Assembly (NCBI GenBank): GCA_964199315.1
Contig: OZ116703.1
Location: 5,766,001 to 5,830,000 of the forward strand
DNA length: 64,000 nucleotides
Direction: 5' to 3'
From: Orbicella franksi
Taxonomy: Eukaryota
Shown here piece after piece: positions 9,618-49,785 of this stretch (its first letter is position 1; every line of letters starts with the position of its first letter). Under the pieces are notes generated by a model that saw nothing but the letters and a program-made list of their open reading frames with translations, did not search any database and was not told the DNA's origin. The translations under genes and the position numbers were made by a program.

Positions 9618-9796
9618 ACATACATAGATACACGCATACATACTTTATTGAACCTCCCCAATGGGGCTTTTCAGGAACAATAATAATTATAAAGTAATTA
9701 TTTACATAGTTATTTGAATTATTTACAAGATTAAAAAGAAAAAAAAACAAAACAAAAACAAAAACAAAATAACTACTCATCACTATATCTTTCCCT
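9618..9796 (-). mobile_element. 5'-truncated LINE 3' end with AATAAA and (GTAT)n tail
   Basis: Minus strand ends ccccattggggaggttcaataaagtatgtatgc...; CCCT repeated at both junctions; absent from copy 1 (near 4270). Confidence 0.6.
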
Positions 9797-10702
9797 CGAG
9801 GGAGAGATCTCTGCAAGTAAGCTCTTTGTTCCAAGAAGTACAGAGAAACACCCATTTACAAATCACTGTTGTTCTGGAGAAACTGGCCTTTCATGGCTCA
9901 AATGTCCATGTTCCAGACGTTTTCTGAATAAACAACGATGTAAGCGCAACCTTGTTTGCAATGAAATTATAGTTTTATTTTTTGTTGTATTTAGAAGTTT
10001 GCAGGATCAAATTTAATTTGTTATTAATTGAATTAATAATGCTAATGAGGATGTACAAGAACACCGATGTAAAAAGAGATTGTCTAATAAAAATGCATGT
10101 AACAAATGTATAACAATATAGATAATCAACATTCCCGAAGGAACCAAGTGTGGCATTAAAGGGCTTCTTAATTAGCCTCTTAACAGGCGACTTCTTCTCT
10201 TCTTACCTATCTGCTCCAGGCCAAGTGGCACCGTGAAGTTCTCTTATTGAGGTCTGTTTACCAATGTCCTTTTTCAACACCCCTGGGTTAACGATCTCAG
10301 GAATTCGACTCAAAATAATTTAGCAGGTGTATAAATGAAGTATCCTCCCTGCTCACAGACAAATGTCTCTCTTGACAAGTGCACATTACACTAAATTCTT
10401 CCCCCACTATGAACCATCTGAGTTTTGCTCTTTAAAAGTTCCATTCCAGTTATGTAGCTCTGCAGAAATACATCAAGTATTCCAAGTTGTTGCATGGTTT
10501 TAAAAGTTCACACGTGAATTTCCAGAATATATCCATACCCACCCCAAGAAGGGTTATTGAAAATTCCAAGGGGTGGGGGTCACAAAGGAGAAAACGTTTA
10601 AAGGAAAGTATGAACTATAACTGGAATTTCCATTATGTGAGGCCTGGTTACAAATGCTAACTGTTTTTTTCCTGACATGTTTTCCTTCTTACGATGTTTT
10701 CT

Positions 10703-28800: not shown

Positions 28801-29217
28801 TCATTCCTTTATGATGTACATTTATATTATCCATAATGCATACACTTAAAGCGCCAGACATGCTTCAGCCATTTCATAAGCCCTTGTTTTCTAACAATTC
28901 AGTTCTTTATTTACCCTATAAAGGGCATTCACACACATTTTATACAGTAAAGTAATGAAAATAGTAAAATATTGAGAGATATGAAGCCGTAAAGAAATAA
29001 AATTCATATAGGACGGTGACCAAAGTAGCAAGAGCTTTCTGGTTAGCGCTCGCTATAGTCAAATAAATGGCAGCATAAAAAATTAATAATAACAAAACAA
29101 AAACCACAATGTTTATAAATTTCTGACCTCTGCAAAAGCATCCGCCAAGTCACTTGAGCGATCCATGACAGGAAGATCTCGAGCAGCCACAATCCGTACT
29201 TTAATCTTTGCTGGCAT
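10844..29217 (-). CDS. C2CD5: C2 domain-containing protein 5 (C2CD5/KIAA0528), 33 coding exons, about 1091 aa
   Basis: Exons traced with GT-AG and consistent phases: 29128-29217, 27829-27915, 27663-27703, 27432-27477, 26690-26774, 26115-26210, 25247-25402, 24696-24756, 24057-24236, 23626-23747, 22582-22709, 22095-22203, 21149-21263, 20401-20498, 20022-20118, 19735-19857, 19186-19275, 18557-18614, 18187-18240, 17703-17777, 17332-17394, 16963-17073, 15992-16129, 15516-15576, 15158-15219, 14825-14914, 14306-14395, 14100-14190, 13244-13357, 12823-12872, 11774-11893, 11522-11668, 10844-11071 (3276 nt). Peptides MPAKIKVRIVAARDLPVMDRSSDLADAF, GFVEELVVNDDPEYQWIDKIRTPR, YRQCFDLEGE, DEPETRDAWW and GQCLLNISGDAV match C2CD5 in order. 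Confidence 0.95.
11928..12220. mobile_element. Non-autonomous element with long inverted repeats containing a tRNA-like module, flanked by 10-bp direct repeats
   Basis: Inverted arms 11953-12027 and 12146-12220; tRNA-like A box AGCTCAGTGGTTAGAGC and B box GGTTCAAATCC at about 12120-12172; AGATATCTGA at 11918-11927 and 12221-12230. Confidence 0.7.
12412..12722. mobile_element. Retroelement remnant, Penelope-like terminal sequence
   Basis: Flanked by ATAATAGAAAC at 12401-12411 and 12712-12722 (11-bp TSD-like). Motif gtggtcgtccgagtgagggtagt...gactgacgtttc...agcggaagtcatcttcagagtc resembles Penelope-like termini from recall; a short related fragment lies at about 41940-41985. Confidence 0.55.
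13579..13660. repeat. Near-perfect hairpin, part of a larger interspersed repeat (about 13380-13690)
   Basis: TACCATGGAATATCCCAC...CACTTGTATTTTCTTGGT-gt-ACCGAGAAAATACAAGTG...GTGGGATATTCCATGGTA. Confidence 0.75.
16350..16825 (+). mobile_element. 5'-truncated CR1/L2-type LINE with decayed ORF2 C-terminus
   Basis: From 16456 it translates DYLTLSVPFSRTESSKNSYFIWV*RSWNELLLNIRESNTLSVFRKKLF, matching the SxF...WNxLP..IR.S.TL..FK C-terminal signature of CR1-clade ORF2; (ATTAAAG)3 tail at 16805-16825. 5' boundary approximate. Confidence 0.7.
19387..19605 (-). mobile_element. SINE family A, 5'-partial
   Basis: Minus strand reads ...gttcgagtcctggccagggg..gtgttcttgggaaagacactttaccctcac...ctgcgatggactaacatccc...gcttcatgttatgcaaactgg. 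Confidence 0.7.
20551..20899. mobile_element. MITE with TGCAGGGTTGCCA terminal inverted repeats and internal (TTCCCTGAC)n words
   Basis: TGCAGGGTTGCCA at 20551-20563 and TGGCAACCCTGCA at 20887-20899; no clear TSD seen. Confidence 0.75.
25442..25750 (+). mobile_element. Full-length SINE family B
   Basis: GGAGGCAGTGTGGCCAAATGGTTTAGGGC head and (ATTTCC)n tail; colinear with 3650-3962. Confidence 0.85.
26438..26577. mobile_element. 140-bp hAT-type MITE
   Basis: 15-bp TIR CAGGCTTTTAGCCAG / CTGGCTAAAAGCCTG and perfect 8-bp TSD ACAGGAAC (26430-26437 and 26578-26585); 8-bp TSDs are typical of hAT. Confidence 0.85.
26790..27065. repeat. Interspersed repeat with internal inverted repeat
   Basis: GGAAAATCTCAAACC at about 26818 versus GGTTTGAGATTTTCC at about 26885; boundaries approximate. 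Confidence 0.45.
28097..28336. mobile_element. MITE-like element (gggccaggttgttc...gaacaacccgaccc)
   Basis: Imperfect terminal inverted repeats; termini related to 30632-30782. Confidence 0.5.
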
Positions 29218-29586
29218 TTTTTTGAGAACACTGCACTGTACTGTTGTGTAAAATGTCAGATAATGATGAATTAATTAAAGGTTTTCACTTTGCAGACACC
29301 CCAACGCAGATCTTTTTCGGGCGCCACCTTTCTTGCAAAGCTACCAGAGCTTCAGTTAATATCATTGTTGCTTCTAGTTTACCAAATCTTGCACTTTCAA
29401 GGTTCTAAGGGCAGAAAGTCGCACTTCAATACAGCTGCAATAATTCGCGTCTGCCTCTCAAAATACACCAGGCGTTACAACTTCCCAGAAGTCCTTGTAA
29501 CCTAAGCACGTGTCGCTCCGCTGTAGTGGCCGCCATCTTGTTTTCGTTCAGCGTAGTAGTTTCCTCTCCGCGATAAATTTGACATT
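29218..29586. promoter_or_regulatory. Bidirectional promoter and 5'-UTR region shared by C2CD5 and CPSF6, with a YY1-type motif
   Basis: Divergent ATGs at 29217 (-) and 29587 (+); GCCGCCATCTTG at 29529-29540 matches the YY1 consensus; CpG-rich relative to flanking introns. Confidence 0.75.
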
Positions 29587-32500
29587 ATGGCTGGCGAAGG
29601 AGGCGTTGATATCGATTTGTACGCCACAGTGGATGAATTTGAGCCAGAGGTTGCTGGTCAGGTAAGATTTAGGGAAGGTTTCTCGCGTGGAGTTCTAAAA
29701 CGTGCACTAACTGAAAACGATAGAACACGCTGATCAAACGTCACTAGATAGGTTTGCGACATTAATCTCATATGCATGCATATTAGTTTGTCGTGTAAAT
29801 ACTTCTGTGAAGAGTACACGAGGAAGGCCATAATGTGTATTCTTTCGCAGGGTCCTTTAATTCAAAAATTATTATATTTAGGCTTTTTCCTGACCTCGTC
29901 GAAACATCAGCGTCACTGTTTGAGCTCACATACACAGAATTTTACCAAGCTTTATACGTTTAGCTTACAGCTAACGGTAGTACGTCATTTTAACTGAAAA
30001 GGCATGCTTTTTGATGTTGTCTTACCCAACGTCCACATTGAAAAGGTAATAAAAGCCAATAGGTTTCTTCACGAACTCAGAGTCTCGAGAAGATAGTTTT
30101 CGAAACTGCTCAGTGGTCTGAAATGGAAAGTCTGCAACCATTATATTACCCTTTCATCGTGGCCTCTCCATTTCTGGCAGCCATTTTATACATACAGCTT
30201 TACGTCGGTGATCTAGCTCTGACTGTTGCCTAAGCATTCCAAGAACTGGAGTTTGACCCAAACTAGATAGTCCAGGTCTCATAAAATGTCCAGAAATCCC
30301 AGAGAACTGTGAGTAGAGAAGTTCACAGTTCAGCAGTTGTGCATCATTATTTCCCCTGTACAATAGTTTGGAGACAAATACTCTGCTTTCTTTTTTAACG
30401 AAACTGAAGCAGTCTTGAAATTGTATTACTGTGGATGGAACCTTATTTTTTTAATTACATCCTTTTGAAAGTTACAGGTAATTAACCTAGCACATATGAA
30501 CCATTTTTTGTTAGCATCATATGACTGAAGGTTTGGACTTGTATGATGATGTGCTTACCACTTCAGGGCCGGTGGAAGATGAGGCATTGCAGTCACATGT
30601 ATGTATAAGGGATTTTGAAAAATTTACAACTCTGGCCTCAGTTGTTCAAAAAGTGCATAACGCTACCCACAGGAAAAATCACTATCCAGTGGATAACTGT
30701 TGACAAAACAAACCACGCTATCCACCAGATAGTGATTTATCCTGTGGATAGCATTACACACCTTTCAAACAATCCAGGCCTGTAGTATGTGTAAGACATC
30801 TACCTTCTAACATTGTCCTATGTTTTTGTTGTTGGCTTTCCTGGTTAGGTTTTATTTTCTATTCAAATTGTGTGCAGAAATGTTTATTAACATCACAACA
30901 AGCATAATTTTCAGTTTCTAACAAGAGAAAACATCCACAGGCACAGATTAAAATTCAGTCCTCTCCACACAGTCATTATCAGTTTCATGTCTGAATGTCA
31001 AAAACCAGTGTTCCAGAGAAAAGAGAGGTAGACCTTGGGTCAAAAACCTGACAAGGTCTGTGACCTGACTCAACAAAATTGATAGAATACCACTGAAGAT
31101 TTGATGAACCTTATCTCTATTAACCTGTTGGAATTTCTTACTTGCACCTTGCCATGAAAACATAACTGGAAGCCTGAAAATTGGTAACATGAGATGCTAT
31201 TTTTGTTATTTGGGTTGACCAGAATAGTTGAACCTGGTGTTGAAGTGGTTATGAGAAAAATTGCCCTCACTCATGGCGGTGACTGTAACGGCTGGCATCC
31301 AGCACAGTTCATGTTGACTTCTCAATTATAAAAGGTTCTTTCCTGAAAAAAGACAGAGCTTTTCTTAAAAATATTTTCTTCCTGTTATCAATCATTTCTT
31401 TTCATTGTGGTCCCTTCCCCCTCCCCCACCCCCCGCTCCGCAACAACAAACTAATACTCTCTAGTCAAAAACCTGAATCTCGTTTTGGTTGATTTTGAAT
31501 TTGAATCAAATGCAAAGATTTGCTAAACTTAATGAACAATCAAAACTCCAGGTCTGATGCCAATCTTAACTGTTAATAATTCACTACATTTTAGTATGAA
31601 GAGGATGTCACTGGTGTCATTCCACCAGATGCAGTCCAACCAGGTAAAATATCACATTACTGTAGGGAATCAATCTGAGATCACAACTGCTTGGTATAAT
31701 ATTATTGATCAGATAATAAATTGGCATTTCAAAGTAATGGTTTGTCCTGCAGATGAGTACGTTAATTGTTTCCTAACATCTAGTTGCATTATCAGCAAAA
31801 CTCTTCCCCTGTAACTTTTGTTCTACAGCACAGTCTTTCTATGTAATATTGTATTTAAGAAATTAAAAAACCATGTACTATGTTTCTGTTGAGTTAGAAA
31901 CACAAGTGGAAGTTTGGGAGAACGAGAAATGCTGTGGGAACAGGGACTGGCGGGCGAGTGTTAGCACACCCTTTTTGAGTTCTCCCAAACTATAACTCAA
32001 TAGAAACAAAAACATGTTTTCTTTTTTTTTTTTTTAGAAAATTCCACAACAAAACAAAGGAAACAACTTGTTTTCTTTGGTTGTCAAAATATAAATTCTC
32101 TTCGCTCATGCCATCATTATCTCTTTGCTCGTGCCATCATTACGTCAATAACTCTTGCTAGTTGTGTTTCTATCAAGTTATTTAAACACAATTTTAAACC
32201 AACCAGTGTGCATATTTTCTTTTGGGCTATTTTTGAAACATGATACAAATGTCTTTTTGTCAGGAGCATATGAATACAAATCTTATACAACAGTCCATCC
32301 TAAATCTGTGGCTGCACGATCTACACACACCTACTATGAAAGGAACAAAGGAAAGCCCCTTTACGTCGGCAACTTGACTTGGGTAGGTCTGAGTTTTGAT
32401 TCTTGCTGGCATACTGTTGTTATTAAGACATGATCAGTCATCAAAGTCATTCACTCAACTTAAGCAGGTGTGGAATAAAAGCCTGAAAAAATTTCAGTCT

Positions 32501-35500
32501 TCCTTCTGTTATGTAACAAGTGTTGAATTGGACTGCCTTGAAGAACTTTACAAATTTTTCAATGTTACTAAACAGAATAGTGATGATTTGACCAAAAATC
32601 AAGAAATACTACTCTGCAAGAAGCATATCACAGTCATTGTCATCATTGTCGCCATCATCATACTCATGATCAACAACATAAATGTTTTGTTGATATTGTC
32701 AATACTTGTCACAAAATGGGTTGCATAGGGCCTCACAAAGCTGCCAGAGCTGTAACAGCTGAGGGCTAAGGAATTTTAGCCTTCCTGTAAAATCACTGAC
32801 TGTAAGACAAAGTATTATTTTCCTTTCTTGTTTAGTGGACAAATGATCAAGAGCTGACAGAATTCTTGCAAGAGTGTGGTGTAACAGATCTGATAAATAT
32901 CAAGTTTTTTGAAAACAGAACCAATGGGCAATCTAAAGGGTGAGTTGGAATCACTTCAAGGTAGCTTTTATTCTAACTTGTACAGATTGTCATTAAATTT
33001 TGTTCTAGTTGAATTCAGTAGTACATAATGTAACAGCTTTTTAATATTTTTATGATGTCGTAGCCTATCAGTAGACAATTTCGCATGTTGACTTTTTGAT
33101 TTTCATTGCTCTGACAGAGATTAGATGTTGGACATTTTACAATTCTTTCCTAATCCTTGACAATCATCATTGTATATTCTTCTTTTTCTTTTTGATTTTC
33201 GCTACCATTTTAACTTTTAATTTTTTGTGAGGGCTACTTCCAATAACTGATTCAAAAACCGGGTTGGTTCCAAAATTTCCTAAAGTTAACAGCATATCCC
33301 ACATGACCCCTTCCAGACTTTACTTAGGTAAGTTTGAAAGACTTGATCTGGTGTGCCAAGAATTTTCCTTTATCTCCTTTTTCACAATGACATCATCTGC
33401 AAAAGCAGTTTGATAATACCATTACAATTTACAGCAGACATCAACAGATATTGTGACTGTCAAATCCATAAAGAAGGTGAATACAATTCCAAATAGTTGA
33501 CATTGTTATTGTCATGAACTCTGGACTGCTACCAAAGTAATCTCTTGGGTTGGGCTATTTTCCTGGGTGAATATTAAAGTGTTCTGCAGCCATTTTATGT
33601 GGGTTATTTTTGTAGTTTTTAAATGCCTCCTTTTTCATACTGCCAACCAAATATGCTTTGTTGGGTAGATTTTAAAAAGGTTCTGCAGCCAGATCTGTAC
33701 TCTGCAGGCAACATTTCCAAGCAATCACCTTCGATTGTTTACTGACTCTGTGTTACCTATACTCACAGCTCTTTCTGCTATTGAGTGACAATGGATAGCA
33801 GTGGGTTCTGGGCACGGGATGCAAGGAAGAATACAACAAACTTACAACAAAGAAATCTGTTAAACAACAGAGAAAAAAATCTCATTTGTGTTTGGTCGAT
33901 CTTTGTCAAAAAAAGTGTCTCGTGCAAATTTTGTAAGAAAGAAAAATATTTTGTGAAACATTTTGTAAAAGGAGACAGAAAAATATTACAGATAACTCTG
34001 TACCATAGTAAAACAATCACAAGAAAAATGAAAATAAATATTTTATTGCCCTTTATTTAAACAATAACTTTAATACAGAATTTGTAAAAATCTTTAAATT
34101 AAACTCAACTGTATTTTTGTTTATTTTGTACAGTAGAATGTTGTATATACTGGATAAATATTTAATTGAGATTAAATTATAGTAATTTATAAAAATATTT
34201 ATAACTAACTTGTTGAAAAGAAAGATACTATTGTATAGGCAGACTACTATTGTAAGTTATAGCATTATGTTTGACAGACAGTTTCCTGAGAACCAGAAAC
34301 TCTGGGCAGATGGAATTATATTTGGAAAGTGTATTGTAAATGTGTAGCTAGTGTTCTGATAAGAGATGAAACTGCTATTGTAAATAACTTGGCAACATTG
34401 TTCTCACATTATTTATTCAATGGTGAAAAATGGGCCTTCCATCCTTAAATTCTACTGTACGTAGGTTTCTCTCAACCATTTAAGATGCAACCAAAAAGGT
34501 TCCGCAAAAGTCAGTGCTCAGGCAGAAAGCAAGAACACTAATTAATTTGCAAAATTTTGTACAATTAAAAACATGCATCTTGTTATCTGCAATTTGTATG
34601 GGTAATCACATGATTACAAGTGCAATTTGGAATAATTAAGCACTAGTGAATTTTTTAAAGGCTAACAAAGTTGCATGAGCCTTGGCCAATTTACAAATAG
34701 TATTTGAAAAATTTACTAGTGCTTATTTATTCCAAATTGCAAGAGAATAATCGTATGATTATTTGTTAATAATGCACTTCAAACAAGATTATCTACACAT
34801 TGTTTCCTCAGTCAGGCAATGTGCATGGTATTCTCATACCTTTGAACATTTCTGAAAATATTTGCAAAACTTCCAAAAATGTTTGAAAGCCTTCAGCAAG
34901 CTTCAGATGATCTTCAGCACTCTTCAGAAATCATCGCAACTCTTCGCCAATCTTTGGAGATCTTTGGAAGGGTTAAGGTGATTGTGAGAGATGTTTGGGT
35001 GATATTTGTTGACATTCAGAAGGGTTCAGGTAATCCTAGGAAGTGCTCAGAGAGCAGCTAATTGTCTTTGTCTATCTTTGGAAGGCCTCTGGTGAACTTT
35101 GACCACCTTCAAAAAATGTAGGATGAGCATCGGTAGTCTTAGAGTGTCTCTGTATTAACTTCGGATATCTTCATTGTAATTTGCACTCTTGTTTCAAATT
35201 TGCACTGGTGTTACATGAAAACTGCACCCCTTTTTAGCCAATCAGAATCGAGCAATTTCTTCAAGTGCATTATTAAATTTGTAATGCACCAAGGTGTGAT
35301 TCATACATGTGCATGAAAATTGCATGTATGGATGTAAGAGGTGTTGCTGTAAGTACATGCAATTTACAGTCCTTGCAATGTTATATAAATGCAAAAGAAT
35401 GACAGCTTCAGTACTTGCAGGGTAAAAATCCAGCAACCTTTCTTAATCTGTGGCAGATGGCAACCTGTGGGTTGGTTTTCTTTGCAGTTTCACCTGGCCT

Positions 35501-38500
35501 CATATCAGTGGCAGTACAATACATGTTCCAAAAATAATTCCAGTGGCTTGTAGATTTTCTGGTTTTTACTACTGTACATGTATGTAACAGGAATATTATA
35601 CATGAGTGTATTAAGCTTCACAGCACGCTTTACCCTGTATGGTAATCTGCCTTCCTTGCAAAGAGAATAATCTTGTAAGATTTGGGGCTTGTTTCTGGTT
35701 GTAAATTAATGTGTATTTATGTAGTCTACTGTGGAAATAAATATTCTGCCATTACCAGTTTGATACTAACAGTTTGATGACTTAACCGTACCACGACTGT
35801 GTACTTTGAGAACAATTAGCGTGACAATGTGTGTGTTTCTTCGGTGGCCATCGATGTTAGGACAAACTCTGCTTTTTGACCGTTGCCAAATGTTTTAGGA
35901 TCTCTTTGATAAGTTGTGTCAGATCTTACACGTTTCATCACGCGTTGAGGCAATCAAATTTATCTTCTGGACTGTCTTTTTCGTGGGATTCATTTTTTAT
36001 CTCATATTCATTAATTTCTTTGTGGAACAAAGATGTGATCAGGAACGTTTCGTGACCGTAACATGTAAAGTAAAGCACACCAGTTCACAATTTAAGTTTT
36101 TTTGAGATCATAAAAATATCAGTGCATTTACCCCCAGAAGAAGATTCTTTGCGAAGCCCTCTTTTTAGAAATTATTTTGCAACATAGCTAGGGTGTGTTT
36201 GACAAGAACTGAGTTCATTATCAATCTCAATTGCTCCACTTTAAAGTAGCCATATTGTCTACAGATTTGGTTTGCTGTAACGAGGATTTGTTTTAAATTA
36301 TCTATAACTATACATTTTTGCACTTACCAAAAGGCTTGACAGCCGTTACATTTTGGGTTACTGACCAGTAAATGATATCTTGATTGCAAAGATTTCAACA
36401 TGGAAGATACTGTCATTGAATAATTTCACCATCTCTTGTATGGGTGTACAAGTACCTGTTGAATGTCTAAAATACAGACCTTTTTCAGTCAACTTTGTCA
36501 GTGCTTTTGACAACTACAAGAACAGGACTTTTGTTACAAGTGTGTTATAATATAAATCTACCAAGTGTACAATGTAATTGGGTATTTCAAAGAAAGCAGT
36601 TATTTGCCAGAGTGCTTGGTCCTTTCTATACAAGTGAGTATTGATATTGTGTTGGATACCATGAATGGTGCGTTAGTTTTTACATTGCCATATAAACAAA
36701 AAAAAAAAAATATTTCAAGTATGTTTGGCTCAACTTGTGTGACATTTAATAATTCAAGGTAGGTAGGCATTCCTCGAGAAAGAGGTCAATTCAGGCAGAT
36801 TTTTTGCAGCTCACATACACAAACTGGGAAATGCACAAAATCAAAGTCACCAATTTTGGAGCATGTAATAGATTGAGATATCTGCCTATGACCATTATTC
36901 CACAAATTACTGGCTACTGATAATTGTGTTTTATAATTGACTTTTTGACTTACTTCTTTTCATTTCTCAGCTTTGCAATGATCGAGCTTGGTTCTGACAC
37001 TTCAGTTCAACTTGTCACAGAAAAATTACCAAAAATGTAGGTATATCGATATTATTGCCAGCTGAAGAAGAAACTAATTAGATTATTGAACTTAAGCCCT
37101 TCAAATCTAGGGAGCTTGTGGTTTATCTTCCACCTGAATTATGGGCTGTCAGGGCCATAGCCAGAAAAAAATGTTATTATCCATGAAAATATCATGACTG
37201 AGGCATTGTCCACAGTTAAATTCTCTTCTTAGGTATTTAGGTGTTTATGATGACTATAAACAACAAAAATGAAAATAAAATAAAAATATGATCAAGGCAA
37301 GTGGCTCGGTTTGCCTGTCACTAGCCATGGCCCTGGCTGTGGCTTAATCGTACTGAGCCTTCTTGGGTCACATGTGCGATGGTGGCCTTTAAATGCTCAC
37401 ACTTATTTCAATCTTCTCTTACTTTTATATTGCATTTATTAGCTATAGCTTTCAAACTTTGCCCAAAATATCAAGTTATCTACATATTAGAGGAAAACAA
37501 ATGAATGCCAAATCTTGATGATAGTACACAGGGTACTGGAGGACTGTGGAGGACCCCCCAAGTTTTGTGACTTATTTTGCCTCCTTGTTTGACCAGTTTG
37601 TGGAGTGCCTTCTCTTGGATTCTGGTAACTAATAAAATTGTCTTGCATTGGTGTGCCATGACAGTTCAACAGGTCTATTTTCTGTTTTTATTCAGGGAGG
37701 TTCATGGACAATATCCAGTTGTGACACCAGCAACTAAACAGTACTTACAGCAGTTTGAAGCTCAGTCGAGGAAAAGTAAGATCAAGAATACAGCTAAATT
37801 TTTCAAAGTAGTATTTCTGCAAAATTTGGCTTGTCGACACCACAAAAGAGTTACTTAACCTCATCTTAGTTAGGGAAAACTGTATTTACAGTTACTTTCA
37901 ACACCAATTTGCATTACGTATGCAAATTTATGTGTTCAAAGTAAATGCAAACAAGGTTTTTCCTGGTCACAATGATGTTGATGTAGCAAAACTAAATTAA
38001 TTAGCTTAATATTAAAAGGCGCAAGACTTTCATCCTGCAAGCTTTAAGAAAACTCAACATAATTCAACATGTGATCTAATTGGTTGTACCTGTAATCTTC
38101 ACCCCTAATGAATAGAAGCATCCTTGTGTGCTCAGGATAAATTAATGCTTGAGTAATTTGAGGGCTGCGTTTTGAAGCCAAGAGAATACTAAGGCAAAGG
38201 CGAATATGACTTCAGTAATGATCATCCTATAATTTCCCCTAGAAATGTTGGAAATTAAGAGCTTGAAAAAACAAAAGTTGGTTATATGTAATGGAAATTA
38301 CTTCTAACCCCTCCCCCAACCCAAACTGTATACACTGAATAATCTGAAAATCTTTTTTTCTGTTAGAGCTATTAATAATTCTTCATATTGATGGTAATGG
38401 CCATTTAACCTTTAAACCTCAACTTTTGCAGATAATCCTGGCAGTATGGGAGGTTCACATGCAGAGCAAGATGGCCCAGGATTTCAACAAGGCGGCAGAG

Positions 38501-41500
38501 GGTTTGGTTACAACCGTGGAGGTTTCAGAGGGCGTGGTGGATTCCCTGTGCGCCCAGGAATGGGACGAGGGTTTGAGCATGGACCACCTCCAGGAGAGAT
38601 CCATGGACATGGGCGTGGAGGGCCCTGGATGGGTAAGGAGGGTCGCTGATATGTTGCAAGATCAATTTTTGTTTTTATGTCCTCCGAATGAAACTGCTCT
38701 GGCACTGGCCCTGTTTTGCAGACTCAGAGTGCCATTATGATAAGAATTTGTACCATTTTGATTGGAAGTTAGAAAAAGTACTCCCATTAGAGAGAGACCA
38801 TTTTGTTAATTTCCTTAAAGTTTTGGTTCTGATACCGGAAATGTAATCACAGGTTTTATTCAAGTTTACAACTTCACTTACAGTTCGCACTTCTCTCAGT
38901 AATTTTCTGCCCATGTTCCTTTGTCACGTGACACTCGCTCCCTAAGTTATCGCTCACCACTAACTTCATAACATAAGTGAGAAAGAAAAAAACTGTTTTT
39001 GCCTCGTATCAAGCTGCAAAATTTCCTGTAACTTTCCTGGGTGTGACTGTCATCACTGTATAGCAAGTCTGTGATCTATCTTTGTCTTGTTGTTTTGCAG
39101 GACCAGGCCATATGGGAATCCCAAGACATCCTGCTCCTGGAATGCCACCTTTCCATGGTGAACATCCTCCTGCATACTACCCAATGGCACTCCCTCCCCC
39201 TGGGGAGAAGCCACTTGGTCCAATACTACCTCAGGCACCACCGGTAAGAAAGCGAATTGAGATGTTGTCCAGTGACGTCCACGTTGTCCAGTGACATCAC
39301 TGTAATTATTGTTATTTGACAGAAGTTGCTGATTTGTGTTTGTCTTTTTCTAGCAACCCCCACCACCTGGAGCTGGTCCTATGCCAGATCACAGAGGACC
39401 AGGTATGTAGTTATGTTATTTATTGGTAACAGCATTCCCCTTGATTAAGAACTGCCCTTGAAGAAGCACTGCTCTTGTCTGCAAAGAGTTATACAAGTGC
39501 TGCATTTGAACAAGCCCTGCAACCCTTGACAACGTGCTGCTTGTTCAAAATACTTGAGTTCTATAGTAGCACTTACCAGTATTCAAAGAGGTTTGCGCCC
39601 CTATGCATCTACTTCAGGGGGGGAGGGGGGGGCAGGCTCTAGGCAAATGGACAGGCTGTGAGGATGGTTTTGTACACTTGGTTTGACCATCTAGGGAAAA
39701 GTTTATTTTTAAAGGAATTTTGGTTCAAAATGTTCTGCCTGGCTGTGAAAACCACTTGTCCTCCTGGTGAAAATGTTAGTGAATCCCCTGATCTACTTGA
39801 TTCTGATAATTTATGTTAAAAAGAGTGACCAGGACATTTTGATCGGAATATGAGTTGGTGATGCTATCACTTTGGATATAAATGATAGTTATCTCTTATT
39901 CAGAGAAGTTTTTCATTAAGATGTTAGTAAGCTGGATGCTATTGAATAAGCGCCACATAAAAACCTTAAAAGTTAGGGAGCCATGTGGTAATGTTTCAAG
40001 AAAATACACTTAAACTTGTTCTACTTGCCACAACCCAGTACAGCATAGATGTTTTGTTTTAAAGCTCTTATTGATTCTTTACAGGCATGGTTCCACCATT
40101 CCCCAAGGCTCCCGTTGCACCGCATGTGAACCCAGCATTTTTTCCAGAAGGGCCACCAGTAAGTTTTTTGGGAGTAAATTGAAACGGAACTTAAGAGTGA
40201 TGTATGATTTACCAGTTTAAAGAGAGATTCAAAGGCTACTCATTAACTTTGTAAACCATTACGTGACATGCAACAGTTGGAAAATGCATACCATTATAGT
40301 GAGATTTAAACTTAGAGGACATTATGACAATGTGGAAAGGCTCAAAAGAATTCAGACGTCAATTAAAGGGACCTGTTTTCTTTTTTTGTCAGCCAGAGAC
40401 ATTCCTTGCAGCTGGGGGTGCTGGCGTAAGTCGTCAAATGGACATGATGGCACAGTTTATGCCGAGACCAGGTACGAAGTACTCGGATTTGCATTTAATT
40501 TTCTGTTATTCGTTTTCTATTGTGAACTTGTCTTCCATTCGATCTTTCAGTCTCCTGATCTGTCCTCCTTTGTAAAATAACTGAGAAATAAAAAATTCCA
40601 TTCAGCACAAAAATATGCACAAATTATTTTTCCAGAGACGTTATCTGTTTTCAGAAGGGTATCGTTTTTGGGAAGTAAAGCAGGGCGGAAACTGCGGGGG
40701 AGTAAAGCTGGAGGGTAGCTGTGAACTTCACTAAACACAGATAATGTCTCTGGGAAAGTATTCTAAGATATCCCCACTTGGTCGGGGATATCAGAGATTA
40801 TAATCCATCAAATATTTCCTGCTCGCGTGCGATTTTCGAGCGATATTCCCCAATTTTCAAAACCGTGCGTGTTGCAAAAAAATTTTGAACGATAATAAAC
40901 ACAAAAGGCTCCATTTGGCGCGAAAATGTGCTCGGATATTTGTCTTGGGACATTATCTGCTCCTCAAAGCTCAAAGTTTTCCTCGAACTACGCTCTCAGA
41001 AAACTGTTCGCTCCCGAAACAGGTAATGTCCGCGGACAAAGATCCGAGCGTATTTGATTTCCGCGCCAAATAGAGGCTATTGTTTAAATATTCTGTCACG
41101 TGACGTGTTGAGCAATCACCAGTGCGAAAACTTTTTTGATGGATCGTAGTTACCTGTTTTTTGGCCTGAAGTTTTTCAACCTTGCCAAACCATCATTTTG
41201 AAAAGTTTCTGTTAAGTTACATGTACCGACATGATGTCAGATTATCGTCGTATTTTGTAGGTGATGATTTCAACGAGTCCATGAAGAGAAATCAGATGCT
41301 TGCTAGCAGCGCCATCAAACGAGCTATGTCGGATGCCAATGCTGGTAAGCTAGTATGCTGTCCCTTCCCCTGGAACAAAGCCCTAGTGCTGTTTTTAACT
41401 GGGTGTCGCAAGTAATCCAGAATTACTTTGGCATTGCTTTACTCCGCACTGTGATTGGTTATAAAAAAAAAAGCGCGTTATCTACTTGACCAATGAGAAA

Positions 41501-43289
41501 CAAAAGTAATTGCGACTTGGCTGCATGCGTTTTCCCGCGCTTGGAACCGGTTTCGTCGATTGGTCATTCGGGTTACACACAGTTAAATACTGCTCCATGA
41601 TGTAATGGGAATATTATCCTTTGGCCCTTAAGATGTTGAATTTCTTTTACAAAATTGGAATCGTCAATTGGATAAGTAACTTACTGAGTTAATAGAGGTG
41701 AATAAATGAAAGATCATATAGGTCAATCATGTCTTCATATTACTGTATGGGTACCGAGCGAGGTGCTGGGATTTAATTGTGCATTGCTTGTGAAATAGGC
41801 GACTACGAGAGTGGAATTGAAACATTGGTTGGAGCAATATCGCTTATTAAACAGTCACCAACAGCTGCGGAAGAACGATGCCAGGTAAGAACCTAAACGG
41901 TAAATGGTTTGAACCCAGGAGTATCAGTAGTTTGTATAGGGTGATCGTCTGGGTGAGAGTAGTTCTGAAAAAAATTGTTGTTTATTAAAAAATACAACGA
42001 TAATAACGACAACATTAACAGTCAATTAAAATAGGAGGTTTGTGAGGCAGACGCGAGCTTTCGGCTATCCGCTTTCCGCAATAGCTGGGGTCGTCATTAT
42101 AATAGTAAACTGGCGAAAACCATGTTACTGAGAAAGCCAGGCGGTAATGCAAAGTTTCAAGATCACATGACAGGATGTCAGAAGTTTGTTATACAGTATA
42201 GTCAAACTTCAATGAAGGGTCCACCCTCTGGGAATAGACAGGTAGCTGCTTGTTAAATTCCAGCCAGAAAGAAGCATCTGGTATAGTACAAACTCTGTTA
42301 TTTATGGTCTAACTTCTATTAAAGGTCAGGTAGCTGTTTGTTAGGTACCAGCTAGAAAAAAAGCATCGGGTGTGGTGGAAACTCCGTTATTTAAGTGCCA
42401 ACGAATACGCATGGGCGCTAGAGAGAACTGCACTAAACAGTGAAAGCTTTGGCGCGTGGTCTTGCTTTTCTTTGTGCGTAAAGGATGCGGTCGGTTTATG
42501 TGTACGCGTATTTTGTGTCAGGTGCTTGTTCAGTCGTTACAAGATTGTCTTCAAGGACTGGAGTTACAACTGCTAGAAAGAAGGTAAGTATCTTTTGTTA
42601 CTGTTCGTTTTTTACACGACCCCGCGAGCTTGGAGCTTAAAATATTATCGTGCGTAAATAAATGCCATCTATCTACCTATTCAAAAACGAAACAATTTGA
42701 TGGCTTTGTTGTCAGAAATTTCAAGTTTTCTTTTGTATCACCTTGGACGCTTTAAAAGTATCTACGTCACGGTTTGCGTATCTTGAAAAGTTAGCCCAAA
42801 TTTTTCAAGTTCATCGTTTGCAATCCTTGTTAATCTTCTCCATCCTTAACCATCCTTGTGCCTTTATGGTTTATTATAAACATTTTAGTGTTTTTCTATC
42901 TTAGTAAACAACTTTTTCAGTTTTCCTTCAATTTAAAGGTAATTTTATAAGTGATGAAAATGACTCAAAATGCCGTGACTGAGCTCCTTTAAAAAGTACG
43001 TATGGTTTGGAGAACTCCTAGTTTCACCAGTAACAGTGCAGTGCGTTTGTTTCTCAGTGCAGTCTTTGTTGCCCCTGAATTACGTTGTTTGACGATCGGT
43101 CAATTTTATTCCAGGTCGACGGGGAGTAAACATCATTTCAGCGACAAGGATGACTACGAAGGCGAGCCGAGAGAAAAACGACACAGACGAAGACGGTCAC
43201 GGTCAAGATCGCGTGACAGGAGCCGCAGGTCAAGATCACGCGAGAAGCGCTCGAGATCACGTGACCGAGATCGTCACCGCCGAAGATGA
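29587..43289 (+). CDS. CPSF6: Cleavage and polyadenylation specificity factor 6 (CFIm68; CPSF6/7 family), 16 coding exons, about 509 aa
   Basis: Exons 29587-29661, 30515-30598, 31595-31643, 32264-32382, 32836-32939, 36971-37036, 37696-37775, 38432-38632, 39101-39243, 39354-39402, 40085-40158, 40393-40471, 41261-41344, 41799-41884, 42522-42583, 43115-43289 (1530 nt, phases consistent). Motifs: LDLYDDV; RRM LYVGNLTWWT...IKFFENRTNGQSKGFA; Pro/Gly-rich; APHVNPAFF; GDYESGIETLVGAISLIKQS; VQSLQDCLQG; C-terminal RS/RD domain. Confidence 0.95.
30632..30782. mobile_element. MITE with internal (TATCCA / TGGATA) palindromic words
   Basis: ctggcctcagttgttcaaa ... ttcaaacaatccaggcctg termini; internal inverted repeats. 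Confidence 0.6.
35549..35841 (+). terminator. Candidate intronic polyadenylation site in CPSF6 intron 5 (UGUA cluster, AATAAA, GU-rich DSE)
   Basis: 10 TGTA at 35549-35723; AATAAA at 35736-35741; CA at 35756-35757; TGTGTGTGTTTCTT at 35828-35841. Confidence 0.55.
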
Positions 43290-43770
43290 AAAGCCCCGTG
43301 TGAAGAATGTTTTTTTAAAGTCGTCTAATGCTGTGGTCGAAACTACACTTTGTAACCCCATGCTGTATTCAGTCGTGTAAATTCTGCTCCCTTGTAAGAT
43401 AGTGTAGGCTCTGATCTTCGCCGGCGTTATATAGATTGTCACGCAACGCTCCTCGCCACAAGCAATGATTGGGGATAAACGTAGCGTGGCAACTCATGCG
43501 ATGGCTGCGAAGGAGATCGAATGATTCTCTGCCTTCTTTACGGCGCTCGTCTCGTTCACAAGCTGCCAAACTAGTGTTGTTTGACTGTTTTCCTTTTTGC
43601 TCCATTTCCGAAGTGGTTATAGCCTTTCGGATAGTTCTAGGAATTTGTTGCTAACCTCTAGAGTTGTAAATCACTTTTAAGAAACCCTTCAACGTGTCTC
43701 TATTTCTCTGTTTATATACCATTGGTTTCTGCACGAACTCTCCTTTTTTTTACCAGCCTTATATGAGGTT

Positions 43771-43776
43771 AATAAA
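43771..43776 (+). terminator. Probable CPSF6 3' poly(A) signal
   Basis: AATAAA about 480 nt after the stop codon; several TGTA upstream in the UTR; T/GT-rich sequence downstream. Confidence 0.5.
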
Positions 43777-44029
43777 GAAATGTAACTGATAAACAGAAGA
43801 GTTTTATTCTGTGTTCGCTTGAGATCTTGTCCGCCGATCGTTGGCACTGACCAAAAGATAAAATGTGTTAAGAGATCGTGTTAATCTCGCCTCGGGACTC
43901 GTGCGTTATCGTCAAACCGCCCGTACCGCAGACGAGATCTTCCGGCATTAATGAGGCCTTCTCTTGTCCCCAAGGGCCGTTATCAGTATTACCTCACTCA
44001 GTAAAAGGCGCGAAACAAGATAAGCGGAC

Positions 44030-44368
44030 TCACAACTAGCCGCAAGTTGAACTTGCGTAGAGACTTGAATGGGGGCCGAACGGACTCGTAAGTTTCCTCG
44101 CTAGTCGCAAAAACCTATTTCAAGGCTACATATCCTGCATTTCATTAGCTAACAGGTTTCTAAAACAACGAATGGACGTTACTCAACTTGCGTAGACTTT
44201 GGGTGGCGAAACGGTGAAAGACTTGCGTCGACTTGCGTGCAAATTTGATCTAGACTAGAGTGAGCGCAAGTCAACTCAAGCCCACCCAAGACCTGGCGAA
44301 ACGGAGTCGCAAGGAGGCCCAAGTTTTCAATTTTCGTCTACTTGCGAGTTCGTGTGGCCAGGACTTTA
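44030..44368. mobile_element. MITE-like repeat with many ACTTGCG / CGCAAGT inverted words
   Basis: Recurrent acttgcgt and cgcaagt words; ends tggccaggacttta. 5' boundary approximate. Confidence 0.55.
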
Positions 44369-45270
44369 GGTGGGAAAACGCAGATCGTGTCAAGTTCCCG
44401 AGTGCAGCAGCGAAGTCGTTGCCACGCTAAGAAGAGAGACGCAGGAAAGGAGTTAAGAGAAAGATCTGGGAACGAGTAGTTTTATTAATAGTTCCTTTGT
44501 GAGTTGCACCTGTCTCGTCGACAAACACAGAATCTTCTGAATGACAGTTGAAACAGATAAACAAAAGCGGCATGCTAATATGTGTAATAATAGCTTTTTG
44601 TCACTTAAATCTATAAAAACGAATTCAGTTTCATCGTGAGTTTTTCTAAGCCCCAAAATAAATCGATCATTTTCGATAGAGCTCAGCTTATTTATTCTAG
44701 CAACGATGAAAGCATTTTTCATGGAAGATCAAAGTAATAAACGTTTTCTTTTACGACATTTCCAGAGCAAACAAAGACATGCAAATGGCATAATGGTTCC
44801 GTCTTGTATATGACATTCAATTTCGAGCCAAGCTGTCAAAAGAAAACATATGGCTAAGAGGACGGCGATATTCAATGCTTGGAGAGTCCGTTTATTTGCG
44901 AAATAAGAAACAGTAAGTGGAACACGCTAACAAGGTGTTAGGCGATTTATGGGTGTGCAAATCGGTTGAGGACTTGTTCAGTGGGAAAAGCGGCTGTGAA
45001 TATTTACTTTTAGCGAGAAAAACCGGCAAGAGAGCTTATGACTTATTGATACTACCCGACTTGACTTCCTTTTAAATTTGAGTGGAATATTTAACGAGCA
45101 ACAATTATACGGTTGCTATCGTGTTGCTAAGCTAACAATTTTTCGCTTGAAGTCAAAACATACAGTGTAAGGTTTTGACTCGCGAAGTTTTAACGGGGAT
45201 TTTTTAAGGTAGCCGCGAAAAAAAAAACATTTCGGTGTCGGAAAACTTTGTTTGAATAAGCCGAGGCAAA

Positions 45271-48200
45271 ATGGCTTCGTCGATAATTGCTGGAGTAAAC
45301 GTCGAAGATATATCAAGACATTTAAATTGTTCTCTCTGTAGAAGGTTGATTCGTACACCGAGACTTTTGCCATGCTTACATTCATTTTGTCAAGTTTGTG
45401 TTCAAAACCTGGCTGAGAAACTCGCGCCGAACGAATTCCTGGCTTGCCCGCTGTGTAAAACAGACGCGAAGATTTCAAAGGAAGAAGTGGAAAACCTGCC
45501 GATAAATTTCTTTTTGGACAACATGCTTGATATTGCGTTGATAAATTCGAGCGACAGAGAACCTGTTCCTTGTTCGAACTGCGACTCGTTCAATTCAGCC
45601 GCGACTTCTCGATGCGTGGATTGTGGGGAGTTTCTTTGCGAGAATTGCTACAATGTCCACAAGAGAATTCGTCAGACCAAGGAACACAAGATTTTGACGA
45701 TTTCCGAGCTTCTTGCCAGTAAAACCGGGGAGGACTTACACAGACCAGCGTTTTGTAGAATCCATCACAGCGAACAATTGAAATATTACTGCGAAACGTG
45801 CAACGAGGCAGTTTGTAGAGATTGTGTTTTAATGGAACATCGTCAGCACAAATATGATTACATTAAAGATTCAAAAAAGATACAGAAACAGAAGGTCGTC
45901 GTCGAGAACCTGTTTAATCAATGCTCTGAGAATATTCCAGTGTTAGAAAAATCGATTAAGGAAATACAGGGAATTTCCGATACTCTTCGTGGAAGGTTAG
46001 CGGCAGTCAAGGCTGAAATCAGAGAAGCCACTTTAAAGCAGATAAAAGTTTTAAAGGAAAAAGAGAGGAAACTTCTGATGGAGGCGGACAGAATTCACAA
46101 CGGGAAAGCGACCATTTTGAGGCGGCAAAAAGACCAACTCGAGGAAGACTTCGCAAGGTTCAAAGCCGGTTGCGATTTTTCCGAGCAGGTTTTGAAGTAC
46201 GCGAATGAGGTCGAACTGCTCTCACTGAAAACACACATCACTGAAAGGCTAACAGAGTTGAACAGCACGGAACTTGACTGCCTTCCGCACGAAAACGCGG
46301 AATTAAAATACGAGGTGAACAGCAAAGAAGCCGAGGCTGTCGTCTCTCAGTCTCTGGGAAGTTTAAAAACAAGCGGTCCACATTTGGTGTTGGAAGATAT
46401 TGAGATACCGCCTTCCACGAATGGAAGTATGAGCGAGTCCGTGGAAGATTTCCGTGAAGAAGCGCCACTTTCCGTGGAAGTACGAGATCCCGGCGGAGTC
46501 CTTCTTCCTCCGGAGACAATCCACCAAGGTAAATTGTTGCTTATTGGTAAAGGAATATTAAAATTCATTTCAATTGATTTAATGCAATGTACCTCCCAAT
46601 ATCTATTTGAAGCATTCCCTCGGTAGTATACCTCCCAAAACGTAACCTGAGTGTTGTTTTCACCCATTTGAGTTTTCTCTCAAAATATTTTAATTGAAAT
46701 GGCCATATTTTGATATAACAGACCGTGCGTTATAGGTTCACTTAAGACGACTACTTTTTCAAAAATAAATTCTTCACATGTATTTTCACTTATGGAGAGA
46801 CTTCAGAAAATATCTTTAAAAAAATTAAGAATGGATAAACAGATTTCCAAAAGGAATGGTTTTGCATTGACTGACTGCGAACTTTAATTTGTGCCTTTGA
46901 TCATTTCCTTGCGACTTTCTACAGCTGTTATAAAAAAAAAAATTTAAATCAACAGTTGAAAGATTTAGTAACTATCATGTTAGTTTGCAAATAACCTTTT
47001 TGCGGCTTCTTTAAATGAACGAGAATTTTGATCTCTCTCCCACTAATTGTGAGAGAATTATCTTGATGGCTTATTCTGATTACGAGCCAAGATTTTGCCT
47101 GTACCACAGCAACCTCTAGATAATACACATATATTATGTGTTGTTCGCCGGGGTACCGTTCGTCTATTTACAATTCCACGTTTCATCAGGCTCGACCTTG
47201 TTTCTAAGTTGTTAATTCATAATAGGTCGAGTTTCTCAGAACCAGTCTTCAACGTGTTATAAGCATTTGCTTTTGATAAGACTTCACGCGTTAGCCTCAG
47301 TTGCAAGCTAGTTCCAGTCCAATACCGAGAAAACGAACTCATCACCAGTCTTCTTGTCAGTGTGTTGATGCTATGGAGAAATTGGATATCAATCTGTATC
47401 CTTTTTTCCTTTTTTGCAGCTGACGGACAGTCTTACACAATATATCATCCGTTCTTCAACGGCACCTTCTCGTTCGCTGTGTTCGTGCGTGGACAGGTTG
47501 TGGAGGGCTTTCCGCTGGACATAAACATCGGGGACATCAGGCCTCGTGTTCGAAGCGCCAAGAAAGCTATCGCGGGGAACGGGACCAAGTTTGGTAAATT
47601 AGGAGATCCCCAGGGTGTGGCAGTTAGTGAGGAGGGGAACGTGATCGTCAGCGACTCGCGTAATCATCGTCTTCAGGTGGGTAAACTTCTGTCGATCATT
47701 ACAAAAATTATCATAAATTGTAGGTGCGTAAATTAGGAGTGCGCACCTCTACTCTTACTCTTGGCTTTGATCTTTGGCCAGCATTTTTAGCAACAAAATT
47801 TTAAATTAAAAAGCTAAGCATTGCGGTAGTGATTGTTTTGTTTGTATTGGGCAATGCACAAATTGGATGTTGGATTTCTAACTTTTTACCAAGTTTTCTC
47901 AAACTTTTGAGACCTTAATAATTAAGGTATTTATTTTACAGCTAGACAGGTGTCACTGGATCTGTTCAGGAGATCTATCATCATTGCCGTTTTTATCTGT
48001 TTGTATAAAAGGTGTTTGACATGGATGGGAACTTTCGCTTCCGGTTTGGCTCGCCCGGAAGTCGAGATGGTCATTTCCAGTTTCCCAGCGGAGTTGCAGT
48101 GACCAGCGAGGGGAACATTGTTGTAGCGGACTCAATGAATAATAGAATCCAAGTAAGTCATCTACATAGAAAGTTTACCCAGGGTGACATTCAAAGGCAA

Positions 48201-49289
48201 TCCTAGTTGCTGGATAGACGGACTCTTAAGTCCGTTCCTCACAAGCGACACAAGCATAAGCATAAATAAGCATGAAAGAAGCCTTTGAACTAGTGAGGAC
48301 GGCCATAAGCATAAGAATATCAAAACCTTGCGTTCTTCTTAGGCTTGTCGCGTTTATGTCCAGTGGGGACATGTTGGCATAAGCATAAACACAAGCGAAA
48401 GACTTTCAACCAATCAGCGAGCGCTTTATGGTTATGCCAGCAATGTCCTCACTGGACATAACACCGACATAAGCATAAGAACACTTATGCTTATGCTTAT
48501 GTCGCAGCCGTCCTCACTAGTGCATCAGCTTCTTATACTTATACTTGCGTCGCAGGTAAGACCAGGATTTAGTTGCTGGACTGACGGACTGCGGACTGGC
48601 GGACTGATTAAAAAAAAGATCACATCCAAGGACAACTTTCCTATTACTGTGCGTAAATGACGTACTAACTGTACTGTAAGTGTTCTAATCAGTACTACTA
48701 TAAAATTATTTTGCAGATATTTACGAAAGATGGCAAGTTTATTAAGAAGTTTGGCAAAGGAAGTATGGAGGGAGAGCGCCTCTATCAGCCTTACGGTGTC
48801 GCCTTAGACACCCAGGGTCGTATCTTTGTTGTAGACCGAGGAAATGCTCGCGTTCTTGTGTTCAATCGGGAAGGTCAAATAATATTGACATTCGGTAGTC
48901 TTGGCGACGGAAAGGGCCAGTTCAATTGCCCATCAGGCGTAGCAGTGAACAGTAAGGGTCACGTGATTATCACTGACTTCGGAAACGATCGCGTTCAGGT
49001 GTTCAGCTCGAAAGGCGAGTTCCTGTTCAAGTTCGGAAAGAGCGGAAGGGGCGACGGCGAACTCAATTGGCCCACCGGAGTAACCACGGACGCTGACGAT
49101 CACATTATCGTGAGCGACTCGTACAATCATCGGATTCAGATGTTCAACGAAGACGGCTCGTTTCTGACACGATTTGGAAACGAAGGGAACAAGAGAGGGC
49201 AGTTTAAAAGACCCGAGGGAGTTGCTGTTACGAAGCAGGGAAATATCGTTGTTGCGGACTGGGGAAATGATAGAATACAGGTTTTCTGA
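45271..49289 (+). CDS. TRIM-NHL E3 ligase (RING, two B-boxes, coiled coil, short filamin-like segment, 6 NHL repeats); TRIM71/TRIM2/3-like, about 742 aa
   Basis: Exons 45271-46528, 47420-47676, 48012-48152, 48717-49289 splice in frame (2229 nt). RING CSLC...PCLHSFCQVC...CPLC; B-boxes CSNC...CVDCGEFLC..C...H and CRIH...YYCETC...CRDC....H; six P.GVAV....IVV.D..N.RIQVF repeats. Exact orthologue not identifiable. Confidence 0.9.
48227..48571. mobile_element. MITE with (GCATAA)n / (TTATGC)n subterminal arrays, in TRIM-NHL intron 3
   Basis: Left cctcacaagcgacacaagcataagcataa versus right cttatacttgcgtcgcagg; same family as 49786-50333. Confidence 0.7.
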
Positions 49290-49785
49290 AGCTTTCAACC
49301 TGAAGGAAGCTTGCAGATGCAGACCTTGGTGTTGTGACGGTGCTCAAGCCGACAGCTTGGCTAAGTAGCCAAAATTTCTGGATAGAACGTTGTAGTTTGC
49401 TCTCCAAAGTCGTCCAAATGTGTGCAAGAAATTAAATGAATCAGTTTATCGATGCGTTTACACAAGAAAGGAAGATTTACAACATCGTACACTTTAGATA
49501 CTTGACATCGCCTGTATGGGAGTGTATTTCATTAGAGATTTCATTTCTAATAAGTAATGGTGTTATGTTCAAAGCATACTGATCGATATCTATTCAGATA
49601 ACATTGTATTTTTACAAGGGTATTGCAGTGAGGACACTCGAACCGTGAACACTTGACATTTTTTGTGCGTTTTTTTAGTGACGAAAGAATGAAGGTTCTT
49701 CATATAAACGTGGGAGCAGGCTCAACTTTGAGTCACAAGCGCGAGCGAAGCGATCCGGCGCTCACTGCTCGCGCGTGTGCTCCCC

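Follow-up and report, generated by a model that had tools for sequence, protein, structure and literature searches.

In vertebrates, a conserved poly(A) site in intron 1 of PCF11 truncates the mRNA before the functional domains are encoded and provides negative feedback, according to two papers (PMC11870849, PMC8904962). CstF-77 (CSTF3, or su(f) in Drosophila) has an intronic site that is conserved over large distances and gives rise to an unproductive short isoform, with reported modulation by U1 snRNP (Luo et al. 2013, cited in PMC8904962). Within cleavage factor Im (CFIm), two sources describe CFIm25 as binding UGUA and CFIm68 as activating such sites through FIP1 (PMC7948361, PMC8904962). 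NUDT21, which encodes CFIm25, has been called an autoregulatory core subunit (PMC13399382), and its own mRNA is a UGUA-dependent target of alternative polyadenylation. In mouse and other mammals, unproductive isoforms of Cpsf6 set the protein level, with SRSF3-dependent inclusion of exon 6 and an exon 5a that gives CFIm72 (PMC7948361). Here we describe a candidate terminal exon within intron 5 of CPSF6, the gene for CFIm68, in a 64,000-nt stretch of the coral Orbicella franksi (assembly GCA_964199315.1, contig OZ116703.1, positions 5,766,001 to 5,830,000 of the forward strand). This whole stretch is referred to as the window, and coordinates are counted from its first letter.

On its + strand, the window contains a CPSF6 gene whose exons match the CPSF6 proteins of Acropora, Montipora, Nematostella and Exaiptasia in tblastn, and a Pfam hint of RSLD_CPSF6 agrees with this identity. 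Intron 5 is 4031 nt long and splits the RNA recognition motif (RRM) at SKG/F (slashes mark splice boundaries throughout). An initial annotation of this DNA had proposed that the intron contains a compact alternative last exon at 35488-35841. A spliced exon with conserved, UGUA-rich sequence (TGTA in the DNA) that bears poly(A) hexamers does exist here, but its acceptor lies 1.7 kb upstream of the one proposed. Our preferred reading, to which we give about half of our confidence, is that intron 5 holds an ancient alternative terminal exon that leads to an unproductive CPSF6 mRNA, that the AATAAA at 35736 is likely its distal poly(A) site, and that CFIm would act on it in a feedback loop.

We scanned the JGI collection of metagenome and metatranscriptome contigs with a degenerate exon 5 pattern, which yielded eight contigs that were then compared to the window by BLAST and inspected. 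One of these (L011; 3299 nt, 98-99% identical to the window) opens with the 16 nt at the 3' end of exon 4, continues through exon 5 and goes on directly with positions 33769-36951 of the window. Another, L009, comes from a second species and has the same order of exon 4, exon 5 and 33769. In both, no GT follows exon 5 and the omitted segment runs from a GT (32940) to an AG (33768), which shows that they are spliced RNAs. These two assembled contigs from two coral species show that exon 5 can be spliced to the acceptor 33768/33769, and a more distant transcript described below (L001) joins the same end of exon 5 to a novel exon. The alternative frame reads GG/C TCT TTC TGC TAT TGA, or ...NGQSKG-SFCY-stop, with the TGA at 33782-33784. 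The initial annotation had predicted that the protein is cut before RNP1, and indeed the RNA junction places the stop just after SKG; the 33 added residues that it expected are replaced by SFCY. The canonical junction of exon 5 to exon 6 was also absent from the contigs of the collection. Two other JGI contigs, from the sample series of L011 and L009 (L005, L010), are colinear with the genome through introns 1-4 and stop 12-17 nt into intron 5. These ends look like branching of the assembly graph at the end of exon 5, which fits several competing fates for this exon.

To compare the intron between species, we aligned the window with genomic contigs of related corals: L012 (OMLO01001114.1, the species of L009), L015 (ENA ERZ27314233), L002 and L008, of which L002 reaches only 34729, short of 35488-35841. 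Identity to L012 and L015, respectively, was 84% and 85% at third positions of the coding sequence, 75% and 83% in the 5' part of intron 5, 98.6% and 95.6% in the acceptor flank (33700-33768), 91% in both over the core block that follows it (33769-34390, ~630 nt), 84% and 88% at 35488-35760, 77% (half alignable) and 76% at 35800-36450, and 92% in both in a third block (36500-36640). The core block is non-coding and yet conserved above synonymous sites. An open reading frame (ORF) of 89 codons within it (33791-34057) was considered as a possible protein-coding explanation and rejected: it has no Pfam match, its single database look-alike is an ORF on a relative's genomic contig, its codon 18 is a stop in L009 and L012, and a 1-nt deletion shifts its frame in L011. 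The constraint on the core block is therefore not protein-coding. Conservation of this block stops ~20 nt past an AATAAA (~34383, ~+615 from the acceptor) that is found in L012, L015, L002 and L009, a boundary of the kind that a 3' end would produce. Loss of a single base has turned this hexamer into AAATAAC in the window and L011.

Beyond these corals, a phmmer search with exon 5 found L001 (Logan, SRR31906495; 150-aa protein P0001), a spliced transcript from a distant hexacoral whose N-terminus is 62-68% identical to the CPSF6 proteins of Acropora, Montipora, Nematostella and Exaiptasia. It comprises a 5' untranslated region (UTR) and exons 1-5, and then continues without a GT at the exact end of exon 5 to read LGDYG-stop. 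The tail is 951 nt long and A/T-rich, contains 29 TGTA versus 10.2 expected (rank 1), and ends 14 nt after an AATAAA that is preceded by 5 TGTA within 100 nt and 9 within 200 nt. Primary-sequence homology between this tail and the coral intron was not found. In Nematostella (locus L004, from P0276), the best local alignment of intron 5 to coral 33601-34450 falls exactly on the RNA-verified acceptor, where the two share TTTACTGA..GTTACC-ATACTCACAG/ with a score of 38, where 60 shuffles reached at most 34. Past this acceptor, at position 3852 of L004, Nematostella has a quick in-frame stop, ten TGTA (3927-4296) and an AATAAA at 4323; the 400 nt upstream of this signal hold 10 TGTA, the most for any of the 41 hexamers in the locus. 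With both the acceptor and a TGTA-rich AATAAA in place, the device seems to predate the split of stony corals and sea anemones. Conservation of the intronic element is seen in the core block (91% versus 84-85% at synonymous sites), in the alignable Nematostella acceptor and in the analogous tail of L001. The Nematostella locus also has a second TGTA cluster (9795-10188; 7 in 175 nt), located in a downstream CPSF6 intron before the C-terminal RSLD exons, with no counterpart in the coral window. Look-ups of the CPSF6 loci of Acropora and Montipora gave no result.

Truncated CPSF6 proteins that end at or just after NGQSKG are present in many animals, and we considered whether they reflect widespread alternative exons. 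We rejected them as evidence for this: two ENA contigs that we inspected (L013, L014) retain a short intron with a G/GTAAG or G/GTAAT donor, and for most ORFs whose last residues are SKG the frame simply reads on into a TGA or TAA, in genomic sequence or in a retained intron. Two database fragments of CPSF6, P0234 (human, 165 aa) and P0229 (Neogobius, 158 aa), diverge directly after NGQSKG with residues that simple read-through of the intron does not explain, which raises the possibility of an alternative exon in the RRM-splitting intron of vertebrates as well. A look-up of the fish short isoform gave no hit.

The compact exon as first proposed would require exon 5 to be spliced straight to 35488, giving a last exon of 270 nt with a 33-residue tail, the stop at TAA 35585 and cleavage after 35736. 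Every motif claimed for it is found at its position (AG ending at 35487, ten TGTA, AATAAA at 35736, CA at 35756, GU-rich sequence at 35828-35841); the AATAAA is the only one in the claimed exon, and one further TGTA lies at 35800. The frame of exon 5 does run from 35488 to the TAA at 35585-35587, so that the model has its frame, its stop and a UGUA-rich poly(A) signal; L015 retains the acceptor-like TTTCTTTGCAG/TTTC, and L012 has it almost unchanged. The junction, however, is missing: the scan of the JGI contigs returned zero matches to the exact exon 5/35488 sequence, and none of the eight exon 5-bearing contigs shows it (0/8), versus two that join 32939 to 33769. L011 is colinear over 35487. 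The acceptor, described as strong in the initial annotation, is moderate, with 10 of 14 pyrimidines where the real acceptors of exons 5 and 6 have 13 of 14, and 12 other YAG sites in intron 5 score as well. An open frame of 32 codons is unremarkable for AT-rich sequence, a look-up of the 54-aa ORF that spans the acceptor gave no database match, and the ~190-nt insertion that L012 carries directly after the acceptor would alter the tail. The GU-rich run is far away for a downstream element. We regard direct splicing to 35488 as very improbable. Because the acceptor in RNA is 33768/33769, 35488-35841 is at most the distal end of a terminal exon of ~2 kb, or a separate unverified exon.

The density of TGTA in this distal part is indeed above background, as had been claimed. 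Ten TGTA in 175 nt is the maximum for the 64 kb on either strand, the next best being 6, with a Poisson P of ~1e-7 per window of this size and ~8e-5 after allowing for all such windows. Consistent with the multiple UGUA of a CFIm-enhanced site, the AATAAA at 35736 is preceded by 5 TGTA within 100 nt and 10 within 200 nt, where the next best of the 233 AATAAA/ATTAAA hexamers has 5 within 200 nt. Its orthologues in L015 and L012 have 3-4 within 100 nt and 6 and 7, respectively, within 200 nt; that in L011 has 9 within 200 nt. The enrichment extends over the entire predicted exon: 33769-35760 contains 33 TGTA versus 14.2 expected from its own dinucleotides, which makes TGTA rank 1 of 256 4-mers, and the best 1993-nt stretch on either strand of the 64 kb (34 TGTA) starts at 33860, with the next best at 20. 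The flanking parts of intron 5, at 6.0 and 6.6 TGTA per kb, are at background (5.7 per kb), and L012 and L015 show the same low-high-lower pattern. Around the AATAAA at 35736, GTGGAAATAAATATTCT is invariant in four sequences (window, L011, L015, L012), and 17 nt around the hexamer are kept with it; identity peaks locally at this signal and falls after ~35800. Could 35488-35841 nevertheless be neutral intron, its cluster a product of chance or low complexity with no relation to the alternative exon upstream? Three of the clustered TGTA share a single TGTACATGTATGTA run, conservation at the level of single motifs is no better than the local average, and this block is no better conserved than synonymous sites. 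The cluster is, however, an extreme outlier, and the orthologous sites of two other species hold 6-7 TGTA where ~1 is expected. Moreover, the AATAAA with its 17 nt is invariant, identity exceeds that of both flanking parts of the intron, and the TGTA enrichment stops at the 35736 signal. These features make a neutral origin quite improbable.

The Pumilio element, too, has UGUA at its core. The truncated mRNA could be real and its UGUA motifs have other 3'UTR roles, for example in mRNA stability or localisation or as targets of PUF-type or other proteins, or the short N-terminal protein could itself be functional, with no feedback by CFIm in either case. A long and highly conserved 3'UTR does suggest dense post-transcriptional regulation. 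On the other hand, only 2 of the 33 TGTA in the exon and 3 of the 29 in L001 fit UGUANAUA, which led us to reject Pumilio elements. The densest clusters in three lineages are also located within 200 nt upstream of an AATAAA, where CFIm sites act, and half an RRM is unlikely to fold. We consider a function of this kind improbable. At the regular 3' end of the gene, the canonical CPSF6 3'UTR (43290-43795) has five TGTA just past the stop and one (43666) in the ~370 nt before the AATAAA at ~43772, so the terminal site looks much less UGUA-dependent than the intronic one.

Poison exons in genes of RNA-binding proteins typically show very high non-coding conservation. The main rival to a terminal exon is that the 33769 exon, perhaps together with 35488-35674 and 36490-36633, is internal and spliced onward to exon 6, producing targets of nonsense-mediated decay, while the poly(A) signals go unused; the excess of TGTA would then be partly a by-product of TGTAAG donor-like motifs. 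The very high conservation of the non-coding block is what such an exon would display, and the premature stop comes six codons in. Donor-like sequences are conserved at 33933 (TTT/GTAAGA), 34253 (ATT/GTAAGT), 35675 (CTT/GTAAGA) and 36634 (CAA/GTGAGT), and mammalian Cpsf6 is under unproductive splicing control (PMC7948361). Against this, three independent contigs (L011, L009, L001) extend beyond the acceptor for hundreds to thousands of nt and show no splice to a further exon, and TGTAAG makes up only 5 of the 33 TGTA. The composition is A/T-rich and 3'UTR-like with conserved AATAAA/ATTAAA, the conservation of the core stops just past an AATAAA, and L001 ends 14 nt after one. On balance, we think a poison cassette unlikely, though it deserves the most weight among the alternatives.

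Several features of these potential donors are described here for completeness. The conserved TTGTAAG at 33933, 34253 and 35675 combines UGUA with an overlapping GUAAG that resembles a 5' splice site, and it is possible that these motifs are U1 snRNP sites near poly(A) signals, of the kind reported for the CstF-77 intron, or that they are real donors. A hypothetical splice from the donor at 34253 to the acceptor at 35487 would excise the non-conserved middle segment. Recursive splicing was rejected, as no GT follows the AG at 33768 and no donor is regenerated. The third conserved block of the intron (36490-36633, with conservation at 36500-36680) has the acceptor TTTTTCAG/ and, in the frame of exon 5, a TGA as its codon 7. 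The block may be a poison exon in its own right, and no RNA support for it was seen in the contigs examined.

Other observations weigh against a terminal exon that is read by CFIm. No poly(A) tail or 3' end was found at 34050-34420 or ~35756 in any read or contig, and the sample types of the JGI contigs were inferred from their splice junctions. L011 reads on to 36951, and L009 extends 277 nt beyond its AATAAA. Both read-throughs may be a merger with pre-mRNA reads by the assembler; since an assembler can join junction reads to pre-mRNA reads, the contigs prove the junction and not the length of any single molecule. The second block (35400-35800) is conserved only about as much as synonymous sites. 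The cross-species conservation that the initial annotation proposed as a check on the intron was found for the AATAAA and for the presence of 6-7 TGTA in two species, but single TGTA of the distal cluster are kept no better than their surroundings (6 of 10 in L015 with 5.7 expected, 7 of 10 in L012 with 4.1 expected; 5 of 10 in both). Finally, the conserved GTAAG at 33933, 34253 and 35675 could be donors of cassette exons.

Splicing of exon 5 to 33769, as seen in the RNA contigs, adds SFCY and a stop, and the product lacks RNP1, the Pro-rich region and the RS-like domain, so that it should be unproductive. Under our preferred reading of a terminal exon, cleavage and polyadenylation would then occur within the intron. 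Proximal candidates are the core-block hexamers (AATAAA at 34033, ATTAAA at 34098 and 34171), joined in relatives by the AATAAA at ~34383 that is lost here; the distal candidate is the UGUA-dense AATAAA at 35736, use of which would make the exon ~2 kb long. Because the ~+615 AATAAA is lost, the distal site would carry more weight in this species. Given that CFIm25 recognises UGUA and that sites with this motif are activated by CFIm68, a high level of CFIm would promote definition of the terminal exon over splicing to exon 6, which would yield more unproductive mRNA and hold the level of CPSF6 down. We infer cleavage at ~35756 and this CFIm-dependent negative feedback, the latter from the established roles of CFIm25 and CFIm68 and by analogy with PCF11 and CstF-77. 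Still more tentatively, the dosage of CFIm68 in hexacorals may be set by an ancient loop, at least as old as the split of stony corals and sea anemones, in which CFIm reads a UGUA-dense terminal exon in the intron that interrupts its own RRM and ends its own mRNA; given the human and fish proteins that diverge after SKG, a similar device might be present in a wider range of animals. Distal poly(A) sites in animals are activated mainly by CFIm, and changes in its dosage alter the length of 3'UTRs across the genome.

Table 1. Features of CPSF6 exons 5 and 6 and of the intervening intron; positions are those of the window.
Feature	Position	Strand	Basis or remark
Exon 5 (WTNDQELTEFLQECGVTDLINIKFFENRTNGQSKG); donor AGG/GTGAGT, 3' end ..AAAGG	32836-32939	+	translation, tblastn
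Part of intron 5 spliced out in the alternative isoform, GT...AG; TGTA 6.0 per kb (background)	32940-33768	+	contigs L011, L009
Branch-point-like TTTACTGAC and acceptor GTTACCTATACTCACAG/ of the alternative exon	33738-33768	+	no differences among five coral sequences
Conserved core of the alternative exon; A/T-rich, 3'UTR-like, 13 TGTA	33769-34400	+	L011/L009 junction, alignment
Middle segment, repeat-rich, poorly conserved; other sequence there in the L012 species	34401-35390	+	identity ~0.35 to L012
Second block, moderately conserved; acceptor-like TTTCTTTGCAG/ (AG ends 35487), TGTA cluster 35549-35723	35400-35800	+	motifs, alignment
3' features of the second block: AATAAA 35736-35741, CA 35756, U/GU-rich 35758-35785	35400-35800	+	
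GU-rich run, conserved	35828-35841	+	70-85 nt beyond the expected cleavage site
Candidate 144-nt cassette exon, donor CAA/GTGAGT, early in-frame TGA	36490-36633	+	92% identity to L012 and L015
Exon 6 (G/FAMIELGSDTSVQLVTEKLPKM, with RNP1); skipped or never reached in the alternative isoform	36971-37036	+	

A repeat origin of the core and second blocks was rejected, as both are single-copy with orthologous matches only. A structured RNA or known RNA family was likewise rejected: an Rfam search at E<=1 over 29000-45000 gave only sub-threshold microRNA-like matches on inverted repeats. Inverted-repeat elements that resemble miniature inverted-repeat transposable elements lie at 34621-34741 and 30659-30755, with sub-threshold matches to Rfam microRNA families on both strands, and an 85-nt piece near 35200-35285 that matches unrelated positions of Nematostella loci is probably a widespread repeat. 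Elsewhere in the window, TGTA is clustered at 51906-52118 and at 9933-10113, possibly near the 3' ends of other transcripts. The downstream neighbour of CPSF6 (45256-49290, + strand) encodes a RING/B-box/coiled-coil protein with NHL repeats, of the TRIM-NHL type.

How CPSF6 balance is controlled is known only in part, with SRSF3-dependent splicing contributing in mouse, and the full text of open-access papers, to which our literature search was confined, contained no description of an intronic terminal exon or of UGUA-based autoregulation in CPSF6. Independently of mechanism, our data demonstrate that cnidarian introns contain non-coding blocks that are more conserved than synonymous sites. 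If the feedback is real, CFIm68 joins PCF11 and CstF-77 as 3'-processing factors that limit themselves by premature polyadenylation, and such loops predate bilaterians; with the motif that the factor reads built into the sensor, the hypothesis is directly testable in Nematostella.

The coral locus resembles each of the described systems in part. Mammalian Cpsf6 belongs to the same gene family and its transcripts are also diverted to non-productive isoforms, but those events lie downstream of the RRM (mouse exons 5-7), consist of skipping or inclusion controlled by an SR protein, and are not positionally homologous to the coral exon. With NUDT21 the coral locus would share a CFIm subunit mRNA that has a UGUA-dependent alternative 3' end; there, tandem alternative polyadenylation in the 3'UTR leaves the protein unchanged, whereas in coral CPSF6 the coding region is truncated. 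The likeness to CstF-77 lies in an intronic element that is kept over long evolutionary distances, in a short isoform that is predicted to be unproductive, and in the GUAAG-type, U1-like motifs that overlap several conserved UGUA in the coral. CstF-77 differs in the factor and in the position of the intron, and the strength of its site depends on CstF rather than on UGUA and CFIm. There is a further parallel to PCF11: in both, as also in CSTF3, intronic poly(A) signals precede the functional domains of a gene for a 3'-end-processing factor, here RNP1, the Pro-rich region and the RS-like domain. The PCF11 site, however, is part of an extended exon/intron 1, and the factor to which it responds is PCF11, while the coral has an internal acceptor that would define a separate terminal exon, with UGUA, and hence CFIm, as the presumed sensor of a hypothetical feedback.

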